In this document: positions 304-63,596 of the stretch, in pieces | How the letters are laid out: every line of letters begins with the position of its first letter | How positions within the stretch are numbered: the first letter of the stretch is position 1 | Sequence record: MN453779.2 | Length of the DNA stretch: 64,000 nucleotides | Direction: 5' to 3' (one strand) | The notes under the pieces: model-generated | The model's database searches: none | Told to the model about the DNA's origin: nothing | Seen by the model: only the letters and a program-made list of their open reading frames with translations | Position numbers and translations under genes: made by a program

Positions 304-337
304 CTATAATATTTCAGACCGATATTATTAGAATGTA
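304..337 (+). promoter_or_regulatory. Putative early (virion-RNAP) promoter, 34-bp motif copy 1
   Basis: CTATAATATTTCAGACCGATATTATTAGAATGTA; aligns ungapped with five other intergenic copies; TATTA[C/T] core resembles the phiKZ early promoter; lies upstream of a nvRNAP subunit. Confidence 0.7.
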
Positions 338-8675: not shown

Positions 8676-9188
8676 ATGAACGCAATTAACCAAACACTCC
8701 CCGTGGAACCTTTAACCATATTTACAAACCCAGCTCCTGTAATGTTTAAACTTAACAGTTGTGATCTTTCTGATTACTTCGAGGGGTACAACTCAGAACA
8801 AACTCTTATTGCCCTTGAGGGAGCTTTAAACATTATCTTTAATCCAGATATTCTTCTAGCCAGAGTTGATGACACATTAACTACTGTTGAAGATCTAGGT
8901 TGGGATAGTGTTGAGAATACCATAACTTCTGAAACGGTATTTAAATTAGTTAATCAACATGATAGTTATACCGCAATGACACATGAGGAGTTAACAGATG
9001 CCTTTGCTAACTCCTTTGACTCAATTGTAAATAAACTATCCGAGGATATCACAGGTGATCACTTTAACTCTGATGTCTCAACTATATACTCAGAAATGGG
9101 AACGTTTAATAGCATTACTGTAAACTCTTATCTGTACGAAGAGAGAAGTAATGTATTAAGAGTATACCTTACTTTCAATATGTACTGA
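8676..9188 (+). CDS. Hypothetical acidic protein, 170 aa
   Basis: ORF ending just before a strong hairpin. Confidence 0.75.
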   Translation: MNAINQTLPVEPLTIFTNPAPVMFKLNSCDLSDYFEGYNSEQTLIALEGALNIIFNPDILLARVDDTLTTVEDLGWDSVENTITSETVFKLVNQHDSYTAMTHEELTDAFANSFDSIVNKLSEDITGDHFNSDVSTIYSEMGTFNSITVNSYLYEERSNVLRVYLTFNMY

Positions 9189-9196
9189 ACATACAT

Positions 9197-9236
9197 AAGT
9201 TCCCTACCTAACCTTGATTGGTTAGGTAGGGAACTT
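9197..9236 (+). terminator. Hairpin terminator
   Basis: AAGTTCCCTACCTAACC-TTGATT-GGTTAGGTAGGGAACTT, 17-bp perfect stem. Confidence 0.8.
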
Positions 9237-9333
9237 TAATTTACTTTTTCTATTTACTGACCAAGGATTTCTTTGTCACAAATACCTTTTACTACCCCAG
9301 ACGTTTATAGTTAAAGGGATATAAATCCCTACT

Positions 9334-9367
9334 CTATAATTTCTCAGACAGATATAATCCCAATGCA
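9334..9367 (+). promoter_or_regulatory. Putative early promoter, 34-bp motif copy 2 (divergent)
   Basis: CTATAATTTCTCAGACAGATATAATCCCAATGCA upstream of the HNH gene; 5' half matches the consensus, 3' half is degenerate. Confidence 0.5.
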
Positions 9368-9399
9368 TCACTACCAGGTGTAAACAAAAGGACCATATA

Positions 9400-10725
9400 A
9401 TGAGTGAAAATAATTACGTTTCAGTAGATGCTGAATTAACCGATGTATACAAGCCTCTGACAGATATCTTAGGTTTGCAATACGATGGCGCTATGAGTTA
9501 CGAAGAACGAGTTCAAAAACGTTACAATTACGTTAAAGAGCAATTGGAACTAGATCCTAACTATGAAGGATGGGATTGGGTAGAATACTGCGGTTCTGCT
9601 AACTCCACGGCTAAGGATCATGAATTTAAGCTGACGCGTTCAGTTGTTTCTATGATAAGTACCAAGGGTAAGTTAGCAACTAAATGTTCGGGAAAAGGAA
9701 TGTCGGTTTCCTTAGGATCGATATCTGGTAGATACCTCAGAACAACGTTCCAAAACTTAAACGGGAAATATATTAAGGCTTATATCCATCGGATTATCGG
9801 ATGTACATTTAAACCAATACCGGACAAATATAAGGATAAAGAAATTAGAGATCTCATAGTTAATCACGATGATGGCAACCGAACTAGAAACCTATTATCA
9901 AACGTGTCGTGGATGACACAGCAGGAAAATCTATTACACGCAGTAGAAATAGGTAAGATCCCTTCCGGGTTTGGACACGCTGAATCACTAAAGGCGACGT
10001 TTACTGTTCCCGGTGAACATTACGGAGAAACCTTTTTGCTCAACGGCTATAACCAAGCAAATGAATTCGGGATTTGCTACCATACGGTAAGGTCAGCCGC
10101 ATTGAAAAATAAGAATACACTATTTTGCGACTGGGAGGTAGCAGTATGCGAGGATATAGTAGAAACACCTATTTCTCCGCCAGATTGGTATAGTATCTAT
10201 ATCAAGGAACATCAAGATGAACGCATGAAGAAATATTTGGATAAGGATAAGAATACAGACACTTTCAAAGGTACTGAAGTCTTCACTGGTGTAGAAACAT
10301 TAACAGATATTTTAAACATAGATTATGACGAGACAACCTTAGATGAACGTGCTAAAATAAGAAAGGCGTACATAGATCTTCACCCAAACGTAGTACATTG
10401 GGAGTTTATGGAATACATCCCAGGGAAGGCATATGCTAGAGAAAACACAACTACACCACCTTGGAGAACTGAAAGTGTGGTTATCAGCACGGATGGAGAA
10501 GTAGGTAAAGTAAATTTAAAAGGTGAAGTTTTTACTAGGGGTGGTCCCAGTGGCGGGTATTATAAGTTCGTCCAAAAGTTTGGTGACTATCCCCAGGAAC
10601 ACATAACGATACACAGGGCAATGGCTTCTACGTTTATACCAGTTCCTGACGGATGTAAACTTAAAGCAAAGTTAGCGGATAATGATAATAAAAATTTGAC
10701 TTTAGACAATATTTACTGGGAGTAA
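9400..10725 (+). CDS. Free-standing HNH homing-endonuclease-like protein with a second, degenerate module
   Basis: HRIIGCTF...IVNHDDGNRTRNLLSNVSWMTQQENLLHA is a typical phage HNH motif; the C-terminal repeat (LTDIL...HRAMASTFIP...NLTLDNIYWE) lacks the NHxDG His. Confidence 0.85.
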   Translation: MSENNYVSVDAELTDVYKPLTDILGLQYDGAMSYEERVQKRYNYVKEQLELDPNYEGWDWVEYCGSANSTAKDHEFKLTRSVVSMISTKGKLATKCSGKGMSVSLGSISGRYLRTTFQNLNGKYIKAYIHRIIGCTFKPIPDKYKDKEIRDLIVNHDDGNRTRNLLSNVSWMTQQENLLHAVEIGKIPSGFGHAESLKATFTVPGEHYGETFLLNGYNQANEFGICYHTVRSAALKNKNTLFCDWEVAVCEDIVETPISPPDWYSIYIKEHQDERMKKYLDKDKNTDTFKGTEVFTGVETLTDILNIDYDETTLDERAKIRKAYIDLHPNVVHWEFMEYIPGKAYARENTTTPPWRTESVVISTDGEVGKVNLKGEVFTRGGPSGGYYKFVQKFGDYPQEHITIHRAMASTFIPVPDGCKLKAKLADNDNKNLTLDNIYWE

Positions 10726-16298: not shown

Positions 16299-16343
16299 AC
16301 ATAAATAACCTACCTAACCGTAATTGGTTAGGTAGGTTTATGT
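16299..16343. terminator. Bidirectional hairpin terminator with ACATAAA/TTTATGT flanks
   Basis: AACCTACCTAACC-GTAATT-GGTTAGGTAGGTT between convergent genes. Confidence 0.8.
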
Positions 16344-16346
16344 TTG

Positions 16347-17270
16347 TTATTTGGAGATCAACTCACGAACCCCTTCCATTACTTGGTTGATTTTAATAAT
16401 TTTGGCATCACAATAATTAATTAAACTTGTTAGGTTATTAGATACAGCAACCAATTTCTTACATAAAGATTTAACCTTATCAGAATGAAGATTAGACTCT
16501 ATATCGGAACTATTTTCTTGCCTTTTAGCTAGTTCATTATTGTGTTCAAGATCTTTAGTAACTTCGGCCAGGGTCTCGGTAACTATCGCTCTCATCTTAC
16601 TAAATAATTTTTGTAATTCAACGAGTGGGGGAGTTGCTTCAAAAATGCTAACTCGTTCGTTATTTTCGTTATAAAAGTATTTAGTTGCATGTTTTTCAGT
16701 TATTACGCCAATGCGACTATTTATCTCTTCCAATTGTGCCGCTTTAGATCTTAGATCTGATATGGAGATCCCTGGTATTTCCTTTAACCTAGATCCTACA
16801 ATCCCTGTAGTAAACATATCTTCACTGTATTTGCGTGTAAAGGTCTCGCATTTGTCAGTTTCTAACTTAATTTTTTCATTATCCATTAATCTTTCAATGC
16901 GACTCCTTTCCAATCGATAAGGATCAAAATCCTTATCATTCCGTTTACCCATAATTTCCTTGCTGACTTTCTCAGTATTTTTTACAGCGTCATCAATCAC
17001 TTTAGCTTGTTTAGAGCCTTTACTACCAAAGAAGAAATCACGTATTGCTTTAATAAAGTTTTTAATCATTTCATAAACTTTAGTAGCGCCAGCTTTAACA
17101 GAAGACATGAACCCTTCTGTTCCAGATCGGTGTTTAAAATCAACACCGTTGAGTTTAAGAACTGTTTTAGCATAAACTGAATCTGGTGATTCTAGATCAC
17201 CATTAGACAGGGATTCAAAACCATTCAAAGTACTTAATACATGTTCTAAATTATCAATATTAACATTCAT
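16347..17270 (-). CDS. Putative head (ejection-type) protein, paralog of 40690..41583
   Basis: Shares YA.TVLKL.G, a GxE cleavage motif (GTEGF) and IKAIRDFFFG with 40690..41583. Confidence 0.65.
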   Translation of the reverse strand: MNVNIDNLEHVLSTLNGFESLSNGDLESPDSVYAKTVLKLNGVDFKHRSGTEGFMSSVKAGATKVYEMIKNFIKAIRDFFFGSKGSKQAKVIDDAVKNTEKVSKEIMGKRNDKDFDPYRLERSRIERLMDNEKIKLETDKCETFTRKYSEDMFTTGIVGSRLKEIPGISISDLRSKAAQLEEINSRIGVITEKHATKYFYNENNERVSIFEATPPLVELQKLFSKMRAIVTETLAEVTKDLEHNNELAKRQENSSDIESNLHSDKVKSLCKKLVAVSNNLTSLINYCDAKIIKINQVMEGVRELISK

Positions 17271-17302
17271 TTACTTTATTTCCATTTAGTTAATTACAAA
17301 GC

Positions 17303-17354
17303 ATTTAAGATCCATAAAATTTCGGACCTATATTACTAGAGTGTATAAACATGA
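17303..17354 (+). promoter_or_regulatory. 52-bp repeat copy A, containing early promoter motif copy 3 (17312-17345)
   Basis: ATTTAAGATCCATA, 10 variable nt, then CCTATATTACTAGAGTGTATAAACATGA; identical blocks recur at 57926-57977. Confidence 0.85.
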
Positions 17355-17431
17355 ATGATTTATCATTCACTTGTTTAAGATAAGAGATTCTTTAATCTCT
17401 TCAACCTTTAAGTATAGAGAAGGAATGTATC

Positions 17432-17860
17432 ATGAATGAACAATATCTGACAGAGAAGCAACTGACTGATGTGTTGATCAACAACGTCGTGGAAACCCAA
17501 ACTCTGGCGCACCAAGGAATCAATCTCAACTTCAATAGTTGGGATGAGATTGTAGAGGTCTCTAAAGAAACAGCCTGCCTTGGTAAGTATACCAATCTGG
17601 CCGGCGCCCTGGCGGGTGTCGCTGCTTCTGTAGCTATCGAGCTCACTCGTGAAGGCGGTAGCGTCGCTACCGCTAGTGTAGCAGCTGGCGTTGGGGGTGG
17701 ATTGATTTTCGCTAACCGTGAAGGCATCATGGGGTTCCAAAATGGTGCCCTTTCCGTGGTTGGTGGGCTCGGTCTGCTGGGTTTGACCCAAGTAGCAGCC
17801 CGTATCGTGGGAGCCGTAGCTCCCAATAAAGTTGAAGAAGCGCAAGAGTACGTCGGTTAA
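17432..17860 (+). CDS. Small Gly/Ala-rich hydrophobic protein, probably membrane-associated, 142 aa
   Basis: AAGGAAT RBS; hydrophobic segments LAGALAGVAASVAI, VAAGVGGGLIFA, LSVVGGLGLLGLTQVAA; codon usage like that of the capsid gene. Confidence 0.75.
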   Translation: MNEQYLTEKQLTDVLINNVVETQTLAHQGINLNFNSWDEIVEVSKETACLGKYTNLAGALAGVAASVAIELTREGGSVATASVAAGVGGGLIFANREGIMGFQNGALSVVGGLGLLGLTQVAARIVGAVAPNKVEEAQEYVG

Positions 17861-17906
17861 TATGACTTGTTGGTGATGCTTGCATCGCCTTTCATGTGAT
17901 ATCTAA

Positions 17907-17938
17907 AGTTACCTACTCCCAACTGGGAGTAGGTAACT
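17907..17938 (+). terminator. Hairpin terminator
   Basis: AGTTACCTACTCCC-AACT-GGGAGTAGGTAACT. Confidence 0.8.
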
Positions 17939-17962
17939 AATACTATTTTATTTTTACTCTTT

Positions 17963-17996
17963 CTATAATTTCTTAAACTGATATTATTAGACTGTA
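17963..17996 (+). promoter_or_regulatory. Putative early promoter, 34-bp motif copy 4
   Basis: CTATAATTTCTTAAACTGATATTATTAGACTGTA upstream of the accessory gene cluster. Confidence 0.7.
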
Positions 17997-18031: not shown

Positions 18032-18565
18032 ATGGAAAATAAAGTTTGTAAGTCCACATTAAAAGTTGGTAACGACTTCCCTATAGCTGAAGTCTTTTTC
18101 CTTGAGAGGGATTTACCGCATTTGGAGTCTCTTTTAGGTTCTCTTTATAATAAATTTAAACTTGATACTACCACATTAGGTTGGGTTGAGTCCTTTCCTA
18201 ATGAACTATCAAAGTTGTTCTGTGTCACAAAGGACTTTCAATTTGTTTATCACACTCTTAATTACAATGCAACATCACCTAGTGAAAGATTAATACGAAA
18301 GTTAGAAAGAGAAGAAGTATATCAAGAAATACATAATTCCCGTGATATTCACGATCTGCTAACTAATGGCACTATATTTTTTACAAATAGATTACTTTCA
18401 GAACCTGTGAATAGTTTTAAAGTAAAAGCGATTTCGGAAATGGAAAGAATAGAGAAACTTCTGAAAGAAGTAGATCTTCAACTATCCCCAGAACAAGAAG
18501 TAAAACTATTGCGCAAAATTGTCAAAGAACAGCAATCTATTATAAATAACCTAAAAGGAATCTAA
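18032..18565 (+). CDS. Hypothetical protein with the shared C-terminal module, 177 aa
   Basis: AAGGAG RBS; C-terminal DLQLSPEQEVKLLRKIV. Confidence 0.8.
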   Translation: MENKVCKSTLKVGNDFPIAEVFFLERDLPHLESLLGSLYNKFKLDTTTLGWVESFPNELSKLFCVTKDFQFVYHTLNYNATSPSERLIRKLEREEVYQEIHNSRDIHDLLTNGTIFFTNRLLSEPVNSFKVKAISEMERIEKLLKEVDLQLSPEQEVKLLRKIVKEQQSIINNLKGI

Positions 18566-37228: not shown

Positions 37229-38413
37229 ATGTCTCTTCATGATATTTTTGCTTCCGTAACTGGTAACGAAAACCTGGAAAACGCTATTGAAGAACAGATC
37301 GAAGCTACTGTTGAAGCAGTAGTTGAAGCTCAAGTTGCTGCCGAAATCGCCGAAGCTGGTGAAGCTGTTGCCGAAGCAGAAGCTGACATCAAAGAAGCCG
37401 AAGTTGCTATTGAAGCTCTGGAAGAGAAAGTTGAAGAACTGGAAGAAGTCGTAGAAGGTATGGAATCCATGCTGTCTGGCGCTACTCCGTTTAACGCCGC
37501 TCTGTTCCATGATCAGTATAAGCGTGCTGCTAAGGTTTCTGCTAAGTTCGGTCAACCAACTGAAATTCACGGTGTTGAATCCTTCGCTGATGCTTCTACC
37601 GCTTCCCTGAACGCTCTGGCTGGTGTAGAATCTTTCAAAGAAACTGCCGCCAAAGGTGTTGCAGCCGTTAAGAAGTTCTTCGTTGATCTGTACAATGGCT
37701 TCATCAACTTCTTTGCTGGTATCTTTAACAAGTTTAAAGGTATCGAGAACCGTGGCAAATCTCTGAAAGCTAAGCTGGCTGCTAAAGATAAACTGGCTGA
37801 GAAGGCTAAACTGCCGAAGTCCTCTGGCTGGCTGAAAGCTGACGGTTCCGCTCCTTCTGTAGGTTCCGTGATGGAATCTGTTGTTAAACAGTGTCAAGGT
37901 GCTATGAACGTAGATGCTTCCGGTACTCCGTTCACCAACCTGAAAGCTGCTGCTGAAACCCTGAAGGGTCTGGGTACTGCTTCCCAAGCTGCCGACAGCG
38001 ATGCTTCTGCTACCTACAAAGTAGCCGTAGAGAAAGGTTCCTTCACCGTTACTATTCCTAAGAAGTCGGAAGGTCTGGCCAACGTCTCCGTCACCGTAGG
38101 TGCTCCGGAAGGTGAAGGTGTGGAGATCCAAGCTCCGGGTAAAGATAAGCTGCAAGATCTGGCTACCAAAGTTATGACTGAAGCTAAGAAACTGCAACTG
38201 TCCAAACTGGATCGTAAAGCTCTGGAAGCTACTCGTGACGCCACCATCGCCAAACTCGAGAAGCTGGGTGCAGAGCAAGGTGCCGATAAGAAAGCTCAGA
38301 TCGCTGAGTACCGCAATGGTACCAAGGGTGCTCTGAAACTCCAACAAGGCGGTCTGAAGGTTGCTGGCGCAATCCTGTCCGCTCAGCTGGACTACGTTGC
38401 TGCCTTTGCTTAA
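37229..38413 (+). CDS. Abundant internal head protein, 394 aa
   Basis: Glu/Ala-rich propeptide, GMESM and two GVESF; strong optimal-codon bias. Confidence 0.7.
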   Translation: MSLHDIFASVTGNENLENAIEEQIEATVEAVVEAQVAAEIAEAGEAVAEAEADIKEAEVAIEALEEKVEELEEVVEGMESMLSGATPFNAALFHDQYKRAAKVSAKFGQPTEIHGVESFADASTASLNALAGVESFKETAAKGVAAVKKFFVDLYNGFINFFAGIFNKFKGIENRGKSLKAKLAAKDKLAEKAKLPKSSGWLKADGSAPSVGSVMESVVKQCQGAMNVDASGTPFTNLKAAAETLKGLGTASQAADSDASATYKVAVEKGSFTVTIPKKSEGLANVSVTVGAPEGEGVEIQAPGKDKLQDLATKVMTEAKKLQLSKLDRKALEATRDATIAKLEKLGAEQGADKKAQIAEYRNGTKGALKLQQGGLKVAGAILSAQLDYVAAFA

Positions 38414-44204: not shown

Positions 44205-45500
44205 ATGGCTCAAACAGTTATCGGACAGGTCGCTGAACCTGTCCAAGAAGAAAGAGCGATGGATAAAGTCTATAGACACTCCATTGTAGAATCTCATTAT
44301 ACGCCTCATACCAGTTTACTCTCTTTTGTATCAGGTTCTCCCACGTTGGTAGAATGGTACAGAGGTAGTTATGGTACAGACGAAGAACAACACGCTTTCA
44401 CTCCTGACTCTATTGAGACTTATAGTTCTTATAAAAGAATCAAAAATCTCATAGTTAAATTAGATGACGGTAATGGTAGTTTCAACTTCGATCAAAATAA
44501 TGCTCAATCTGAACTCACCCATACCGGATATGTGATTTTTGATCTTACTCCCAATAAAGGCGATTTGTTTATCCGCGATATTGGTGACGGTCGAGCTGGT
44601 TTGTTCAAACTTACTGAACAACCAGAGATACGTTCTATCGCTGCTGACAAGTGTTATTACTTCGAAGCCAAACTTCTTGGTGTTGTAACCGAGGAGATTG
44701 AGAATAACTTAAACAGTAAAGTCATCGAAGAGTTATATTACTCCAAAGACATAGCTGTAGCTGGCGGTAACGCCGTCCTTACTAAAGACGATACTCAGCT
44801 TAATAAGAAGCTCTATGATTTCCAGCTGGCAATTATGGATGAGATCCTTGGTAATCATTTCTTCTCTGATGAAAACACTATAGTTATACCCAACGAAAAG
44901 AATGACTATCTTTACGATCCATATTTAGCTAAGTTCCTCTCTTACACTTTCCCAGTTAAATTACTTGGTAGTCGTAATAAGATTGAATTACTCAATGTTA
45001 ACTATTGGGTGGATTCTGGTAAGATGCAAGAACCTCTTACTATTTGGGATATGTTCTACCGTAATGCTTTTGAACATCCTAAACGGTTTAAACAAGATTA
45101 CTTTGTTCATAACAGAAATGAGATGATGAACACCAGAGGGTATGGTAATGTCTACTTTAGCAAAATGGATAGGGTTATTGTAGTTCATAAACCGTCTGCT
45201 ATGGGACAAGCTTACGACTTTAAAGGTGGTTTGTTACCGCAAGGTGTTTATACTCCCCATCCGTCATCAGAGGGTGTAGATTATCCGTACTACTTCTCCA
45301 AAGAGTTTTACGATGGCGCAGGTACTGAGGCGGAGCAATTTATCTGGAAGATGTTCAGAGATAAAACCATTGGTAAAAAAGAGTTGGTTGATGTTCTAGA
45401 GAAATTCTGGGATTTGGAACCAGTTGATAAACTATACATGAGCGGGATTTATGTAGGAGCTTGTAAAACAGCTCTGGTAACGTCGAGCGCTTATGTCTAA
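44205..45500 (+). CDS. Virion structural protein (phiKZ gp99-like), 431 aa
   Basis: Synteny; PNKGDLFIRDIGDGRAGLF segment. Confidence 0.6.
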   Translation: MAQTVIGQVAEPVQEERAMDKVYRHSIVESHYTPHTSLLSFVSGSPTLVEWYRGSYGTDEEQHAFTPDSIETYSSYKRIKNLIVKLDDGNGSFNFDQNNAQSELTHTGYVIFDLTPNKGDLFIRDIGDGRAGLFKLTEQPEIRSIAADKCYYFEAKLLGVVTEEIENNLNSKVIEELYYSKDIAVAGGNAVLTKDDTQLNKKLYDFQLAIMDEILGNHFFSDENTIVIPNEKNDYLYDPYLAKFLSYTFPVKLLGSRNKIELLNVNYWVDSGKMQEPLTIWDMFYRNAFEHPKRFKQDYFVHNRNEMMNTRGYGNVYFSKMDRVIVVHKPSAMGQAYDFKGGLLPQGVYTPHPSSEGVDYPYYFSKEFYDGAGTEAEQFIWKMFRDKTIGKKELVDVLEKFWDLEPVDKLYMSGIYVGACKTALVTSSAYV

Positions 45501-45515
45501 CACGAGGTATATGAA

Positions 45516-46178
45516 GTGGATCTAACACGCTACAATCACGTTAGAGAGAACTTGGTGAGTCTTTACAAAACGATTACCGAAGAAACCTTTAATGTTTACA
45601 TTCCAAAAAGTTCTTTCCTTTCATTGAAACAGATTAAACAAATAGAAAAGAACCCACCTATTAACGGAATGGAGTCTTACGGTAACGTGATCGAACGTCC
45701 ACTTTCTATACTGCGTATGGCTCAGGCCTTTTCAATGGTTGGGGAAGATGACGTTAACTTGGCATTTAGATATCCAAGGAAGGATATTCCAAGAATCTAT
45801 AACACTATTCAAGATTACATCATGTATTGGTTAGAGATTAAACGTAACTATGCAAGATTTGATTCTCCTGGATTAGATGAGTTAGAAATTCTTGAGAAAG
45901 TCGCTAAGTATGTTTTCTCTGCTTATAAAGAGTATCATATTCAAGAAGTCAATGATAAGTTCGGTGTCACTAAACAGTCCGATATGACACTGATGGATTA
46001 TATCAAAGGTACTTGGATGTATGGTGAACAGTTCCAAGAGAACATCTCGTTTATAAGTCACCTTGCTGTCTATAGAGAAGAGAATAACCTTTCCCAGTCT
46101 CATCACATTACCCAGAGTTCAAGTGACCTCCTACGCGATCTGATGGCTCTTAGGAACAAATCAGGGATGGGGGATTAA
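45516..46178 (+). CDS. Hypothetical protein, 220 aa
   Basis: GTG start 8 nt after GAGG. Confidence 0.7.
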   Translation: MDLTRYNHVRENLVSLYKTITEETFNVYIPKSSFLSLKQIKQIEKNPPINGMESYGNVIERPLSILRMAQAFSMVGEDDVNLAFRYPRKDIPRIYNTIQDYIMYWLEIKRNYARFDSPGLDELEILEKVAKYVFSAYKEYHIQEVNDKFGVTKQSDMTLMDYIKGTWMYGEQFQENISFISHLAVYREENNLSQSHHITQSSSDLLRDLMALRNKSGMGD

Positions 46179-46180
46179 TT

Positions 46181-47527
46181 ATGGGTTTAAACAGCCAAAT
46201 AGAAGGTTTCTTAAAACAAGCTGGTATTGTTGAAAAGAGATCTGATAAGTTAATTGATAGTACCAGAATTAAAGCAGTAGTGATTACACCTAAAGCACAG
46301 TTTAAGGCATTAGGTGTAACACATTTTACAGAAGTAGCTGATTTCATTTATAACCGTGCAGAAGTAGTAGGTATTAAACTAAGACTTCAGCCAAGTATTT
46401 ATTTCGATCACGTTGTTCCTTATCGTGACGATCTAATTATTCAAGTTATTATGGATTCAGAATCAGATATGGTGATACGAGAGTTCGTAGCTTCCCCTAT
46501 GGGAGATAAAGACTTTCGAGCCCAAAGTAATAACTCTCAACAAGCCAACTTGGACGCTTATGATGAAACCAACATGGTTGAGTATGAGTTTCAGTTAATT
46601 GATAAGGGTTATAACGTCCTTAAGAACATCCCTGTATCTGAAAACTTCATGATGTGTAAACCAGGTGACGTTCTTCCTCTAGTAATGGAAACTTATAGTA
46701 AACAGGCTAAAATGCCAAGCGGAGTAAAATACAAAGGTCTGTATTTACATCAACCCATTGATAATCAGAATAACTATAGACAAATACTCATACCACAAGG
46801 TACAAGGTTAATCGATGTGCCAAGTTATCTACAAGCTCACGATGAATACGGAATTTACTCTAAGGGTCTAGGTAGCTTCTATAAACAGGGTTATTGGTGG
46901 ATCTATCCTCTCTTTAACACAGAGCTTGCTGACAAACATTATCGTCCTATTGACATTATCCGTGTCCCTCAGGATAAAATCCCTACTCTTGATATGACGT
47001 TTGTTAAAACCGCTGATGCATTAACTATTATATCCACTGGTTATTCTGAACACAGTGACAACGCCGATGTGCGGAAACAAAACAGTGGTGTAGGTAAACG
47101 GATAGTGATGGCTGATGCCATTGCTGGTGATACTGGTTATCATTATACCAAAGGTAGAGCTGTTACTACTAGAGCAGATTCTCTCCAAGAGTATAAACTA
47201 TCAGATAGACGTAACGGTCAAGAGTACATCCCGCTTGATTTGAACCCAACTAGTAACGTTTCTCTCCCTATGAGTGAGAACGCTATGAACGAAGGTGAGT
47301 TCATTGAAGTGGAATGGCACAATGGCGATGTGGGATATTTGGAACCAGGTCATCCTGTTAAATACCAGTACATGGGTGAAGGCAACGACATGGTAGTAAG
47401 AAAAGGATCTTTGTTAGGTTATCGACAAGATCATCTTCCTATTACCACTGGACTAGAACCAAACATGAAACGTGTCTGTAAATTACTTCTATTTCTCAAA
47501 CGTCAAGAAAAATATAAAGCAACTTAA
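46181..47527 (+). CDS. Virion structural protein, probably baseplate hub (phiKZ gp101-like), 448 aa
   Basis: Synteny; YLQ...GIYSKGLGSFY motif. Confidence 0.55.
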   Translation: MGLNSQIEGFLKQAGIVEKRSDKLIDSTRIKAVVITPKAQFKALGVTHFTEVADFIYNRAEVVGIKLRLQPSIYFDHVVPYRDDLIIQVIMDSESDMVIREFVASPMGDKDFRAQSNNSQQANLDAYDETNMVEYEFQLIDKGYNVLKNIPVSENFMMCKPGDVLPLVMETYSKQAKMPSGVKYKGLYLHQPIDNQNNYRQILIPQGTRLIDVPSYLQAHDEYGIYSKGLGSFYKQGYWWIYPLFNTELADKHYRPIDIIRVPQDKIPTLDMTFVKTADALTIISTGYSEHSDNADVRKQNSGVGKRIVMADAIAGDTGYHYTKGRAVTTRADSLQEYKLSDRRNGQEYIPLDLNPTSNVSLPMSENAMNEGEFIEVEWHNGDVGYLEPGHPVKYQYMGEGNDMVVRKGSLLGYRQDHLPITTGLEPNMKRVCKLLLFLKRQEKYKAT

Positions 47528-50185: not shown

Positions 50186-52360
50186 ATGACTATCCAATTT
50201 TCCGTGAAGGGTGCTGGTAACAAAGGCGCTCACCTGAAGAACGTAATGGCTAACCTCCAGGCCGTGCAATTCAAAGAAGGTAATGTCTGGGCTGGTATTA
50301 CTGGTAACGAATCTCTGAACGCTGTTGAATCCACCATCAATGCCGGTATCGGTTTTAACCAGAAGAATGCCATTGCTTCCGCAATCGAATCTTTCAATGA
50401 TCAGAAATTTGCCGATCGTGCCTCCAAGCTGGCAGAAATGGTTAAAGTCGGCGGTATGGAATCCTTCTCTGCTTCTATGGAAGCTGGTAAGATCAACCGT
50501 CACAAAGCTGCTACTCTGGAACTGAACGCTCGTGGTAACCGTCAGTGGGATGCTGCTGAAGAACTGTTCAAAACTGTAACCATTGGTTACGGTGACGAAG
50601 TTCTGTCCCTGCCGATCGATGTAGCAGGTGTTGGTACTTATAACGTTTCTGGTAATGTTAACGAGTCTTTCGAAGACCTGCGCCCGATCGCCTCCGTTCT
50701 GGCTGACGAGAAGTTCTCTTCTGGCGATGACCTGAAACTGGTTCCGGTATATCCTGCTGACGCTGGTAACCCGAACCGCGCAGCTTTCGTTGCCGAAGCT
50801 GACTGGACTCCGTGGGATGAAGCTTATGAAGCCAACGATCTGCTGGGTCGTGAAGCTCACAAGACCAACTATCTGGCAATCCGTAAAGCTAACAACCTGA
50901 TGAGCCTGTGCCAAGCTCCTGGTGCTCCGCGTTTTGAACAGAACGATGAAATCGAAGCAGGCTCTATCCGTCTGAACAGCTTCCTGCTGAAGATCAAGAC
51001 CAAAGATGGTGAGGGTTTTGCTACCCTGGACACTTCTACCATGTCCTCCACCGCCATGCGTCCTGGTACCGGTCTGACTTCTGATGAGAAGCGTCAAATC
51101 GCTTTCGTTATCAACGGTATCGACGTTGCTAACCTGAAGACCAGTGCTGGTGCTCCTACTCAGCTGTTCAAGACTCTGACCGATGCAGGTCTGCAAGTAT
51201 TTGTACAGTTTGAATACTCCGCTACTTACCAGCGTTCTACCCGTGCTCTGTCCCCGACCGTATCTCCTGTCACCATTGCTTATGTAATGAAGAACGGTGA
51301 GAAGCTGGTTCCGGGTACCGCCGGTATGCCTGCCGATATTCAGGCTCTGATTACTGCTCAAGTTACCGAAGCTTCTGTTCACGGTGTTGTTCTGAAAATG
51401 AACCACAACAACGTAAACCAAAGCCGTTACGGTACCACCGTTGTATTTGCAAACACCATCAAGAACTACGGTGTACGTCGCCGTAATCCGATCTCTGTTA
51501 AGTACCCGATGCAAGGTGATGACACCAACGCTGACGTACTGGCTCAGCTGATCAAGCAAATGGACGTACTGGTAACTCGTGAAATGTCTCATGACGCATT
51601 CCGTGCGGCCCATGGTCACTTCGCATACCTGTATGACAACAACGGTCAGCAGATGGTTAACATCAACGATGATAGCTCCTCTGTTCTGCCGGGTCAACAC
51701 TTCCTGAACACCACCGCTGTTCACAGCAAGTTCAAACTGCTGGAAGAAGTCTCCACTCTTGATTCCAAAGACGCTCTGGATAACATCCGTGCCGTTATGG
51801 TCAACAAGATCTATGACATCATCACCGCTCTGCGTGTCAACTCCAACGTTGCCGCACTGAAAGAGCTGGATGGTCGCGCTGAAGAGTATCGTGTAATTGC
51901 ACACTCTGCTGTAGCTCCGTTCCTGATGAACTCTGGTGACTATCGTACCTTTGGTAACAACGTCAAGTTTGAAGTTGTTGAAACCAACATCAACTCTGAG
52001 AAGGGTCTGCTGTGGGTTGTACCGAAGTCCAACACCAAAGATGACGAAATCGACATCTACGGCGGTATGGGGATCTGTGTAACCAAAGAACTGCTGGTTA
52101 TCGAAGGTGCAGTAACTCAGGCTGATCGTCAGTACCGTATGCTGATCACCCAACCTGCTTACCAACACCACGCTCTGAGTTGTGTTTGTGGTCTGGGCGA
52201 AATCGAAGATATCGACCTGCTGCTGAGCGACGAAGGTCTGATCGGTGCTGTTAACAAGCACATGGTACAAGTCAGTGGTTCCACCAATCCTGCCGGTGTG
52301 CAAACTGTTTCCGTGAATAACTGGCCAACCAGCTATCCCGAAACTGTACAAGTACCGTAA
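50186..52360 (+). CDS. Major capsid protein (phiKZ gp120-like)
   Basis: About 724 aa from ATG 50186 (the track extends to a TTG at 50123); GNESL and GMESF propeptide sites; WDAAEELFKTVTI; strongest codon bias in the window; synteny. Confidence 0.88.
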   Translation: MTIQFSVKGAGNKGAHLKNVMANLQAVQFKEGNVWAGITGNESLNAVESTINAGIGFNQKNAIASAIESFNDQKFADRASKLAEMVKVGGMESFSASMEAGKINRHKAATLELNARGNRQWDAAEELFKTVTIGYGDEVLSLPIDVAGVGTYNVSGNVNESFEDLRPIASVLADEKFSSGDDLKLVPVYPADAGNPNRAAFVAEADWTPWDEAYEANDLLGREAHKTNYLAIRKANNLMSLCQAPGAPRFEQNDEIEAGSIRLNSFLLKIKTKDGEGFATLDTSTMSSTAMRPGTGLTSDEKRQIAFVINGIDVANLKTSAGAPTQLFKTLTDAGLQVFVQFEYSATYQRSTRALSPTVSPVTIAYVMKNGEKLVPGTAGMPADIQALITAQVTEASVHGVVLKMNHNNVNQSRYGTTVVFANTIKNYGVRRRNPISVKYPMQGDDTNADVLAQLIKQMDVLVTREMSHDAFRAAHGHFAYLYDNNGQQMVNINDDSSSVLPGQHFLNTTAVHSKFKLLEEVSTLDSKDALDNIRAVMVNKIYDIITALRVNSNVAALKELDGRAEEYRVIAHSAVAPFLMNSGDYRTFGNNVKFEVVETNINSEKGLLWVVPKSNTKDDEIDIYGGMGICVTKELLVIEGAVTQADRQYRMLITQPAYQHHALSCVCGLGEIEDIDLLLSDEGLIGAVNKHMVQVSGSTNPAGVQTVSVNNWPTSYPETVQVP

Positions 52361-52460: not shown

Positions 52461-52494
52461 CTATATTTTTTCAGATAGATATTATTAAGTTGTA
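52461..52494 (+). promoter_or_regulatory. Putative early promoter, 34-bp motif copy 5
   Basis: CTATATTTTTTCAGATAGATATTATTAAGTTGTA upstream of the operon containing the nvRNAP beta N-half. Confidence 0.6.
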
Positions 52495-57925: not shown

Positions 57926-57977
57926 ATTTAAGATCCATAGATTTTCAAACCTATATTACTAGAGTGTATAAACATGA
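57926..57977 (+). promoter_or_regulatory. 52-bp repeat copy B, containing early promoter motif copy 6 (57935-57968)
   Basis: 14-bp and 28-bp blocks identical to 17303-17354 at the same spacing. Confidence 0.85.
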
Positions 57978-58031
57978 CAAGTGTTTATAATATTCACATA
58001 TTTTCCACAAGTCTAGATAAGGAATACAATC

Positions 58032-58475
58032 ATGAACAACTCCGCTCTGAACCTGAACTCTGACATGAACCAACCAGCACCTAGTGTTTCCACTGACACC
58101 TCCAATCTCAGTCCGAACAAATGGATCGTTGCCGGCGTAGCTATCTCTGCTGCTCTGGCTGTTAACCTGACCGACCAAGTTAAAGAAGATCGTTTCGATC
58201 TGATCAGCAATGTCGCGACCATGACCGCTGCAACCTTGGCCGGTGGTGTGTCCTACAAAGTAGCTAGTGACGTTGAAGGGGTACCTACTTCACTGTGCAG
58301 CGTCCTGGGTGGGTCTATCGGCGTCCTGTCTGCGGCAGTTGTCAACCCTACCGTAATGGCCCTGGGAAACAAGGTCAAGAACGGGTTTGGTAGCAAAGCA
58401 GAGGAACAGTTCGATATCGTGATCGTTGATAACGAGACTCTGGAAGAACACCTGGAACAGAAAGAAACCGCATAA
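58032..58475 (+). CDS. Small Gly/Ala-rich hydrophobic protein, probably membrane-associated, 147 aa
   Basis: AAGGAAT RBS; WIVAGVAISAALAV, VATMTAATLAGGVSY, SVLGGSIGVLSAAVV; GC-rich codons. Confidence 0.75.
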   Translation: MNNSALNLNSDMNQPAPSVSTDTSNLSPNKWIVAGVAISAALAVNLTDQVKEDRFDLISNVATMTAATLAGGVSYKVASDVEGVPTSLCSVLGGSIGVLSAAVVNPTVMALGNKVKNGFGSKAEEQFDIVIVDNETLEEHLEQKETA

Positions 58476-58481
58476 TAAGTA

Positions 58482-58513
58482 TTCCTACCTACCCTTTATT
58501 GGGTAGGTAGGAA
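58482..58513. terminator. Bidirectional hairpin terminator
   Basis: TTCCTACCTACCC-TTTATT-GGGTAGGTAGGAA between convergent genes. Confidence 0.8.
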
Positions 58514-58533
58514 CTTAACTATATATTATTTTT

Positions 58534-61487: not shown

Positions 61488-63596
61488 ATGCTAGACAATG
61501 TAGAGTTTAACGCTTATATCCAAAAGACGATCGCATTTGCTCGTACTATTGTGATTAAGTGCGAAGATCTCGCATTGCTTGATAACCGGTTGATGGAACA
61601 GTACTACGGGATTAACTCCGGGACAGATAAGTCCAAATGGCGTTATTATCTCCACCTCAATGGCGAGTATCATAGCACTGATGAGATCATGAAAGTTCAG
61701 TCACTAGATAATGGTGACGTTATTGATTTTACAAAGGCTAATCTGGATATTCATCCAGCCACTAAACGCGCATATAGACTAGGTAGTTACTACTACACTA
61801 GACTTACGGAAAAATATCCAGCTCAGTCTAATTTGATTAACGGTATTATAAACCCGATTCCGCCTTCGGAATCCATACCAGCAAATAATTACCAAATCCT
61901 AAGATATAACAAAGATTATGTTCTTTGGAATGAGTATCAGTTGATTCCTGCTTTGCAAGAACATATTAATACCATGGTGTTGACATCTTTTAAAACTGAA
62001 TACCTGTATACAGATAACTTGATGTTAACTATTTTACTGGGTAATTTATATGCTTCACTAGTCTCAGCTATTTTGATGATAAGGGAAGAGGCAGAAGGTA
62101 CACGTTATGTGCACGAATTCCACATATGGTCAAAGTTAACAAGTCATGGCATTAGTCCGATCTATAAATCGGTACTTGATAACAAACAAACAATGTGGCT
62201 ATATCGCAATATAGATTGGGTACTTCGCAAACAAGGTAGAATCCAAACCTTTGACTCTTTAGTGGATATTATTCTTACTCACAGAAATATACCGCTAGCA
62301 AGACATGAAGCTCTACAGACCACCACTGACCAACTAGATAATTTAGTTCCTACTCCAGCGTTTATTTCTAGACCAGTCAACTTACAAAATAGACTTGGGT
62401 TATCAAGCCGGATGTTAACTGTTAGTGAGTTGATAGTTAAGGAAAACAAAGTTGCTATTGATAATGCGCAGGAAGAGTCCTACAGCATTGCAACAGCGGA
62501 GTACAACATCTCCACCGGTGTACACTCGGACATCCCTACAAAGGTGTTAGAGTCCACTATGGTGGATGCCACAGATCGTAATCCCAATACGATCATGCGT
62601 GTCCTCCATAATCACTGGATTTATTTAGCGGCTAATGATATTTATCAAATCAACCACGATTTTGTTGACTTTAGATCCGGAACGCGCTTTAAATTATCCA
62701 CTAAAGACGCCTACATTCTCTGGGCTTACTTACTAGATAGAAATAGGAAAACGACCCAAGAACATATCCCTGCTTATACTTACTTTAACGTAAGGAAGAT
62801 CCTACCTCCTAACTATCTTGTCTTAATGGGATTAGGAGATAAAGATATTCTTACTGAGGATGTTGCAAAAGACATTCTTAAAGTAACTGTTGAGTATTCA
62901 AGGATTATTTCTCCTGACGTGTTTTTCCTTAAAGCAAAAGAGATCTTTGATAAACAGTGGGATCATCGTAAACTTTATTCCAGAGTACTGAACCTTTTTA
63001 CTCACACCAGAGTTAAAAATGCGGTAGAGAGTTTATACGAAACTGGTGCTGTTAAGCTAACCAATAAAACACGGTATAAAGATTGGTTGACTAGACTAGA
63101 ACTTAACTTTGATGATTACAGTGAAGATGATTGTTTAGAATTAGCTTGGAACATCTGGAAGAAAGTGACCGGATGGGAAAATGCAGCTTTCATGACAATA
63201 GCCGATCAACAGAAACAGTTGATTAACTTGATGAAAGATCTCACCAGCTACACCGTTCAGTACATCGGTTCTACTACTGAAGGTGAGGTAGAAGGACAAA
63301 TCCAGTTAATGGATTTAGTTGATTCTGATATTTGGTCTCCTAATTCAGAAACCGGTTTAGAGTCTGATAATAAAGATCAACTTGTACTAGATGCATTAAA
63401 GGGTACCAAAGAAGCTAGTTTAACAGCTAAAGAGCATAGAGGTTCCCCAGAAGGTAATATGGTGGATCACTTAGAAATCGAATCGATTGGTTCTGGTGAT
63501 ATTCCTATTAATAGTTATTTGAAATATGTGGAAACTGAACCCGATTTCTCTCCATTCCATTTAAACGTCGGGCTAAGGCTTCGAGAAGCTGTTTAA
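61488..63596 (+). CDS. Virion structural protein (phiKZ gp128-like), 702 aa
   Basis: WRYYLHLNGEYH..D motif; divergent from the portal gene. Confidence 0.6.
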   Translation: MLDNVEFNAYIQKTIAFARTIVIKCEDLALLDNRLMEQYYGINSGTDKSKWRYYLHLNGEYHSTDEIMKVQSLDNGDVIDFTKANLDIHPATKRAYRLGSYYYTRLTEKYPAQSNLINGIINPIPPSESIPANNYQILRYNKDYVLWNEYQLIPALQEHINTMVLTSFKTEYLYTDNLMLTILLGNLYASLVSAILMIREEAEGTRYVHEFHIWSKLTSHGISPIYKSVLDNKQTMWLYRNIDWVLRKQGRIQTFDSLVDIILTHRNIPLARHEALQTTTDQLDNLVPTPAFISRPVNLQNRLGLSSRMLTVSELIVKENKVAIDNAQEESYSIATAEYNISTGVHSDIPTKVLESTMVDATDRNPNTIMRVLHNHWIYLAANDIYQINHDFVDFRSGTRFKLSTKDAYILWAYLLDRNRKTTQEHIPAYTYFNVRKILPPNYLVLMGLGDKDILTEDVAKDILKVTVEYSRIISPDVFFLKAKEIFDKQWDHRKLYSRVLNLFTHTRVKNAVESLYETGAVKLTNKTRYKDWLTRLELNFDDYSEDDCLELAWNIWKKVTGWENAAFMTIADQQKQLINLMKDLTSYTVQYIGSTTEGEVEGQIQLMDLVDSDIWSPNSETGLESDNKDQLVLDALKGTKEASLTAKEHRGSPEGNMVDHLEIESIGSGDIPINSYLKYVETEPDFSPFHLNVGLRLREAV

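Follow-up and report, generated by a model that had tools for sequence, protein, structure and literature searches.

Aeromonas phage PS2 carries two small genes, A and B, and we consider it rather likely that their products are early-transcribed, abundant, membrane-inserting three-helix proteins made from ordinary PS2 expression units. Our results add solidly, if modestly, to the annotation of an early gene family that is uncharacterised; the regulatory parts are of known kinds, and the system is not of a new kind. As far as we could find in the literature, both protein families and the grading of the promoters in front of them are undescribed.

Genome setting and organisation of the two cassettes

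The DNA analysed here (the window) is a stretch of 64,000 nucleotides that corresponds to record positions 62001–126000 of MN453779.2; positions are those of the window unless the record is named. Over 17250–17960 the sequence matches Aeromonas phage PS2 (MN453779.2, 240,447 bp, genus Ferozepurvirus) with 100% identity. The gene of chimallin, the nuclear shell protein, lies at record 44901–46802 of PS2 (PHROG match, E = 7e-95), and a phiKZ-type major head protein is encoded at 50186–52357 of the window. In ZPAH34, a relative of PS2, chimallin and multisubunit RNA polymerases have been reported (PMC10321303). Taken together, these observations indicate that PS2 is a jumbo phage of the nucleus-forming type. 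Infection by nucleus-forming jumbo phages begins inside a lipid vesicle.

Cassettes A and B consist of the following features.

17303–17343, plus strand: early promoter of cassette A (upstream block 17303–17316; core 17320–17343, ending in GTG)
17344–17431, plus strand: leader of cassette A (hairpin 1 at 17352–17369; hairpin 2 at 17382–17401; AAGGAAT at 17420–17426)
17432–17860, plus strand: ORF A, 142 aa (variable N-terminal 35–50 aa; Gly/Ala-rich three-helix core at about 55–131; acidic tail)
17864–17899, plus strand: the stop and last 11 codons of a 73-aa two-TM ORF, left in the 3' untranslated region of cassette A (pAEv1810 and AVP1 have the full ORF)
17907–17938, plus strand: terminator hairpin of cassette A with a 14-bp stem, member of the genome-wide terminator family
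57926–57966, plus strand: early promoter of cassette B, strong subclass, exact match to the degenerate consensus
57967–58031, plus strand: leader of cassette B (5'-proximal hairpin, AAGGAAT ribosome site; fold z = −0.6)
58032–58475, plus strand: ORF B, 147 aa (polar N-terminus; three Gly/Ala/Ser-rich apolar segments; acidic tail)
58481–58514, unstranded: terminator hairpin of B, between ORF B and a convergent 975-aa virion structural gene

A sequence-only reading of this DNA had described the two cassettes as a pair of twin units, and much of its description of the parts holds. The ORF lengths are as given (A, 142 aa, 17432–17860; B, 147 aa, 58032–58475), both ORFs share the start context AAGGAAT-N5-ATG, and each is followed by a hairpin with a 14-bp stem (17907–17938 and 58481–58514) of a genome-wide family. 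Two antisense frames are open over ORF A; an open antisense frame there had also been noticed. The claim of structured leaders stands in part: the hairpins are present, but the leaders fold no better than shuffled sequence (z = −1.3 for A, which is not significant, and −0.6 for B). Hairpin 1 of A lies inside a 29-nt stretch (17351–17379) that is missing from the A cassettes of pAEv1810 and AVP1 and that within PS2 occurs in cassettes A and C only; hairpin 2 is also found in pAEv1810 and AVP1. Transcription of cassette A probably starts at about 17342–17345, a position obtained from the published spacing in phiKZ-like phages, in which early transcripts, the products of the virion-packaged polymerase, start about 10 bp downstream of an AT-rich motif (PMC7598289; PMC11512511).

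Cassette A had been called monocistronic. This is true of PS2 only, through the loss of 214 bp; in relatives a 73-aa two-TM ORF precedes the same terminator. Compared with pAEv1810 and AVP1, PS2 has a clean 214-bp deletion (window 17861–17906) that removed the ribosome site and 62 codons of this gene. In pAEv1810 and AVP1 the 73-aa two-TM protein (helix score 2.76) is cotranscribed downstream of A.

The terminators are standard parts of the genome. PS2 has 71 perfect hairpins with stems of at least 10 bp, many of which share a CTAC...GTAG stem motif, and conserved terminator motifs are also known in 201phi2-1 and phiKZ (PMC11512511). Many of the PS2 hairpins have 12–15-bp stems and AATT-type loops, and several are exactly duplicated at distant sites. 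The promoter and leader of A are not confined to A either. In a third cassette (C; record 163350–164010; promoter copy at 163383), the promoter and the 90-nt leader of A precede an unrelated 155-aa ORF. A-type proteins in other phages begin with the same ten residues as this 155-aa protein, a hint of recombination within the common leader and start region. Upstream of cassette A, an RNA-library contig from wastewater fuses 16334 to 17304 and omits a 307-aa minus-strand ORF (16347–17270). The right boundary of this contig is the first base of the promoter block, indicating that the 307-aa gene is absent from some relatives.

The shared block is a phiKZ-type early promoter

We confirmed that 17303–17354 and 57926–57977 contain the same 14-bp and 28-bp blocks at equal spacing; the window has exactly two occurrences of the 28-mer, where chance would give 0. 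The view of these repeats as a pair does not survive, because record 163383 has a further copy, differing at one position, and the motif occurs about 29 times genome-wide. The block is one form of a general promoter motif. A degenerate-pattern search of PS2 gave 32 matches at up to 4 mismatches, all on the plus strand, and 29 after curation. These approximately 29 copies lie 8–137 nt 5' of an ORF, and one of them is upstream of chimallin. In the window the pattern has five matches, at 312, 17320, 17971, 52469 and 57943, against 0.03 expected. Besides the promoters of A and B, the pattern search gave the following features.

312–335, plus strand: other early promoter, ATTAT subclass
17971–17994, plus strand: next early promoter after cassette A, ATTAT subclass, driving a 177-aa ORF at 18032
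52469–52492, plus strand: other early promoter, ATTAT subclass, right after the major head gene

The early-promoter consensus of N1M2, OBP, 201phi2-1, EL and phiKZ has been tabulated (PMC7058600, Table 2), and the 52-bp block agrees with it position by position. Compared by eye, copy B agrees with the N1M2 consensus at 31 of 35 positions. Common to the early promoters of PS2 and the phiKZ-like phages are an AT-rich core (TATATTAC / ATATTAT), TTTCARR before it and a conserved GTG after it. Furthermore, PS2 resembles the phiKZ-like phages in having tens of promoter copies per genome, placed ahead of operons. Judged by this agreement in sequence, the 52-bp block is a phiKZ-type early promoter, of the kind that the virion RNA polymerase recognises. 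The supposed twins are thus two members of a set of about 29 standard early promoters.

The claim that the cassettes are early can be upheld, since the published consensus is matched and the chimallin gene bears the same motif; the earliness of A and B in PS2 is drawn from homology and, as such, is well supported. In principle the motif might not be an early promoter in PS2, and the proteins might be late or structural. The codon bias of B, which resembles that of the major head protein, would fit this. However, the gene of chimallin, which is known to be early, has the motif upstream, no copy lies on the strand with the identified minus-strand virion structural genes, and the motif matches proven early promoters of transcript-profiled jumbo phages, phiKZ among them (PMC7598289). 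We regard a late or structural role as extremely improbable.

Early promoters of PS2 fall into two grades

The promoter copies of PS2 are not uniform. About 10 copies have an ATTAC core, most of them also with a TTTAAGATCCA block upstream, and the remaining early promoters have an ATTAT core with TCTATAATT upstream. In the grade used by A and B, the TTTAAGATCCA block is conserved about 15 bp upstream. Codon adaptation was calculated with the codon set of chimallin and the head protein as reference. Its median is 0.49 for genes downstream of ATTAC promoters versus 0.31 for those downstream of ATTAT promoters (Mann–Whitney p = 0.003), and grading by the upstream block instead gives a difference at p = 0.002 (Mann–Whitney). 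The leaders differ as well: those of the ATTAC grade are 59–94 nt long in nine of ten copies and frequently carry a hairpin near the 5' end, and several copies share the AAGGAAT ribosome site, whereas those of the ATTAT grade are mostly 28–54 nt long with AGGAG-type ribosome sites. On these sequence features the ATTAC/TTTAAGATCCA subclass is the stronger-looking grade, and cassettes A and B both use it, with leaders of 65–90 nt. Two grades distinguish PS2 from the phiKZ-like early promoters as described so far; we found no description of such grading in the literature. It was right to speak of an expression cassette, but the cassette is a general module of the PS2 genome.

Three further genes (record 51752–51895, 236941–237498 and 237623–238255) are driven by first-grade or UP-block early promoters; their products are a single-TM peptide of 47 aa and two proteins whose N-termini look like signal peptides. 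The strongest early genes thus seem to include more than their share of envelope-directed products.

A and B belong to separate families

The proposal of a twin system is not supported: A and B are not demonstrably homologous, and their promoter, ribosome site and terminator are genome-wide standard parts. A direct comparison of A and B gave E = 0.002 in blastp (a single comparison), a probability of 5–7% in hhalign and E = 1–3 in hmmsearch, and we rejected A–B homology as unproven on the latter two values. ORF B is thus treated as a separate sequence family, similar in architecture to A and, by these comparisons, not demonstrably related to it. A and B might still form a dedicated two-part system acting jointly, as the identical promoter blocks and the similar protein architecture could suggest. 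Against this, the promoter and leader of A also drive an unrelated ORF, the promoter drives about 10 other genes, the similarity of A and B is not significant, and other genera have A-type genes without B-type genes. We consider such a joint system highly improbable.

ORF B shares 69–97% identity with its full-length relatives from the same genus-level group; for shorter or longer variants the figure is 62–78%. Its profile matches the C-terminal half of a 319-aa PS2 protein (record 8819–9778; hmmsearch E = 1.5e-20), with 57% identity over 60 residues in blastp. The gene of this protein has a first-grade promoter upstream and ranks 10 among 233 ORFs in codon adaptation. The 319-aa protein is laid out as an N-terminal domain of unrecognised fold, an acidic linker and a C-terminal ORF B module; the B-type module is thus fused in this PS2 paralog to an N-terminal domain of 175 aa.

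ORF A also has a paralog in PS2, D, outside the window at record 191987–192412 (39% identity over 107 residues, E = 4e-20), which likewise has a first-grade promoter upstream. In total, PS2 has at least four Gly/Ala-rich three-helix modules from two families, and these four all stand behind first-grade early promoters.

The A family is conserved next to thymidine kinase

Single-copy relatives of A lie just 3' of thymidine kinase in Aeromonas D3, AerS_266, Kc263, Yubaba, pEt-SU, N1M2 and OBP. A profile search of 1.84 billion proteins gave six matches at E ≤ 0.001, all but one of them within the A/D clade: two are A-family members, three are near or distant relatives of D, and one is a long protein whose match is probably compositional. 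Two distant matches, in AerS_266 and in a metagenomic contig, lie in syntenic loci 3' of thymidine kinase with the same promoter. In each of five further genomes the A/D profile found exactly one copy (E = 1e-19 to 5e-9), and the same method found no relative in EL, KTN4 (phiKZ species), Goslar, 201phi2-1 or Vibrio USC-1. Every A homolog that we inspected has the early-promoter motif upstream. For the N1M2 homolog, the promoter is listed in the table of the N1M2 authors themselves (PMC7058600).

The C-terminal 108 codons of ORF A have a dN/dS of 0.02–0.07, with synonymous sites near saturation. By these ratios the A family is under strong purifying selection. The N-terminal 30–50 residues of A are variable and are swapped between lineages. 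The three-helix module can stand alone, preceded by some 25 to 135 N-terminal residues, and it is also fused to the 175-residue domain. This suggests that it behaves like a C-terminal anchoring or targeting module.

Neither A, B and D nor their homologs had a significant match in Pfam, PHROGs or NCBIfam. Word-based protein searches found close relatives only, IMG/VR gave none, and the sequences of solved structures gave nothing. Three known groups were considered and rejected. The family resembles Gly-zipper_YMGG and Gly-zipper_Omp of Pfam in its Gly/Ala-rich small-xxx-small helices, and the Pfam glycine-zipper profiles gave no match to 17 family members even at E ≤ 10, let alone above the gathering score. 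It resembles the proteolipid c/K subunits of F- and V-type ATPases in having a Gly/Ala-rich helical hairpin with a conserved carboxylate, but it has three helices instead of two or four, and its Glu lies at the end of helix 1, not mid-membrane; the proteolipid match was seen for one homolog at E = 0.02–0.03 and 15 bits, below the cut-offs of 101 and 128. As for holins, the PHROG matches have E = 0.2–0.8, the genes stand behind an early promoter, and no lysis gene is among the annotated or identified neighbours.

The three helices are apolar on all faces

The sequence-only reading had taken A and B for membrane proteins. We examined this in an alignment of 22 sequences with 21–36% identity between subfamilies. 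The core of A has three helices (residues 56–69, 79–94 and 106–123) with nearly no charged or polar residue in any column. The mean charged fraction of helices 1–3 is 0.003, 0.035 and 0.036, against 0.21–0.39 in the loops, the N-terminal part and the tail. The invariant or near-invariant polar residues (Asn55, Glu70, Gln103 and Arg124) are located at helix ends or inside helix 3. A polar exposed face is expected in a small soluble bundle. Helices that are apolar on all faces, together with an invariant Glu and Arg, indicate burial in a membrane. In addition, the weak database matches of family members are nearly all to membrane families (transmembrane, proteolipid and glycine-zipper). Gene context points the same way, since the 73-aa protein encoded after A in pAEv1810 and AVP1 has two strongly hydrophobic helices.

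Other measures are less clear. The maximum Kyte–Doolittle values are 1.90 for D, 1.77 for B and 1.58 for A, so that A is borderline at the threshold of 1.6 over about 19 residues, and soluble PS2 proteins, chimallin among them, reach about 1.6–1.7. Helices 1 and 2 have short unbroken apolar stretches (14–16 residues), and the translocon insertion energies, added up as a simple sum, are unfavourable (+4 to +5 kcal/mol). A and B, with net charges of −7 and −9, have neither a positive-inside pattern nor a signal peptide, and their loops have one Arg each. The membrane claim stays plausible and is now better supported through the all-face apolarity, although hydrophobicity is borderline for A and a positive-inside pattern is absent. 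We conclude that the proteins are probably membrane-buried.

Structure prediction gave only a general picture. AlphaFold reached a pLDDT of 39 with a shallow alignment and 55 (64–73 in the core) with a more diverse one; the model, of low confidence overall and moderate confidence in its core, runs up-down-up as a bundle of three helices. Foldseek gave no match at E ≤ 0.001. The best VIA-align Z was 8.8, below the noise level of helical bundles, and thus only a generic three-helix bundle can be claimed. In the ESM Atlas, scores of 0.80–0.87 were obtained to unnamed clusters, which we take as leads only, and glycine-zipper families were among the nearest predicted structures, with TM-scores of 0.30–0.36 by query. 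The predicted fold resembles designed soluble bundles and transporter helices.

Alternatively, the Gly/Ala helices may lie outside lipid, either in a soluble homo-oligomer or packed on a phage assembly such as the chimallin shell; the proteins would in that case act, early and in abundance, as scaffolds or as factors associated with the shell. The borderline hydrophobicity with short apolar segments, the acidic character without a positive-inside pattern and a model that looks as much like designed soluble bundles as like transporter helices would agree with this, as would the conserved small residues, which lie on a stripe with a period of about 3.5 residues that is typical of tight helix–helix packing. 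On the other hand, the core of about 85 aa contains no amphipathic helices that could shield helices apolar on all faces, the shortest members are nearly without an N-terminal part, and the weak database matches are almost all membrane families. A soluble protein is unlikely on this balance, though it deserves to be kept in mind, and membrane burial is the reading that we prefer.

Codon bias and expression

The ORFs had been described as GC-rich, which is correct: GC is 0.52 for A and 0.51 for B versus a genome mean of 0.38, and GC3 is 0.49 and 0.55 versus a genome mean of 0.345 (sd 0.056). The high GC of A is in good part due to its Gly and Ala content. In codon adaptation B ranks 4, D ranks 11 and A ranks 49 among 233 ORFs. 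The capsid-like codon bias that had been claimed thus applies to B and partly to D but not to A. Likewise, very high expression, which would follow from codon bias, is strongly suggested for B, moderately for D and weakly for A. Outside the cassettes, a 394-aa ORF at 37229–38413 (record 99229–100413) has a codon adaptation of 0.76, as extreme as that of chimallin or the major head protein, and probably encodes another very abundant protein.

In one true RNA library, contigs cover 17815–17941 only, at a depth of about 3, and end 3 nt past the terminator stem; this is compatible with a stable 3' end and counts as no evidence. The wastewater contigs are fragments of many related phages spread over the whole 5.7 kb examined, and for this reason they are uninformative on transcription.

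Proposed role of the A and B proteins

If A and B are early membrane proteins, the virion-packaged RNA polymerase would transcribe their units within minutes of infection, and the proteins would accumulate in quantity. The three-helix module would then insert into the host inner membrane or the early infection vesicle and might serve there as an anchor or a remodelling element, and the variable N-terminal head and the acidic tail would remain cytoplasmic. Conservation of the A family in phages of at least six host genera suggests a conserved partner (lipid, or proteins of the phage) and speaks against a host-specific receptor.

This conservation also bears on a gatekeeping or toxic role in the membrane, that is, superinfection exclusion, as by Imm and Sp of T4, or an ion channel lined by Glu and Arg that depolarises the cell. 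Like A and B, T4 Imm and Sp are small, early proteins with hydrophobic helices, and they act in superinfection exclusion. Early timing, small size and membrane-like helices would suit such a role, and so would the invariant charged residues inside or at the ends of the apolar helices and the sub-threshold likeness to proteolipid c/K subunits and holins. Exclusion genes, however, are usually fast-evolving and host-specific, whereas the A core is kept in synteny in phages of Aeromonas, Klebsiella, Serratia, Edwardsiella, Kosakonia and Pseudomonas with the low dN/dS given above, and no match to a known family reaches significance. Furthermore, A and B have no sequence similarity to Imm or Sp and differ from them in having three Gly/Ala-rich helices, an acidic character, several paralogs and conservation across genera. 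We find a gatekeeping role doubtful and return to early membrane proteins with an anchoring or remodelling function.

A more specific idea is that the A family adjacent to thymidine kinase provides phage-made components of the lipid vesicle, with channel or stabiliser subunits arranged around the Glu and the Arg. For the early-vesicle stage, we know of no phage-made membrane protein. The import and export channels of the early vesicle are called unidentified in a recent review (PMC12908238). That no homolog was found in phiKZ-type phages, in which early vesicles were described, counts against the membrane reading in general; we regard the idea of vesicle components as a long shot.

Implications

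The graded early promoter, together with its leader and ribosome site, offers a ready module for strong or weak expression in jumbo phage engineering. What the proteins themselves mean for the biology of these phages depends on their role. If A and B prove to be ordinary exclusion factors or scaffolds, the gain would be a modest one in annotation. If the vesicle idea were true, they would be the first phage-encoded membrane proteins of the vesicle that encloses the genome. In summary, a conserved and strongly selected family, probably abundant and membrane-buried and placed throughout one clade behind its strongest early promoters, is a concrete candidate for the vesicle stage of infection.
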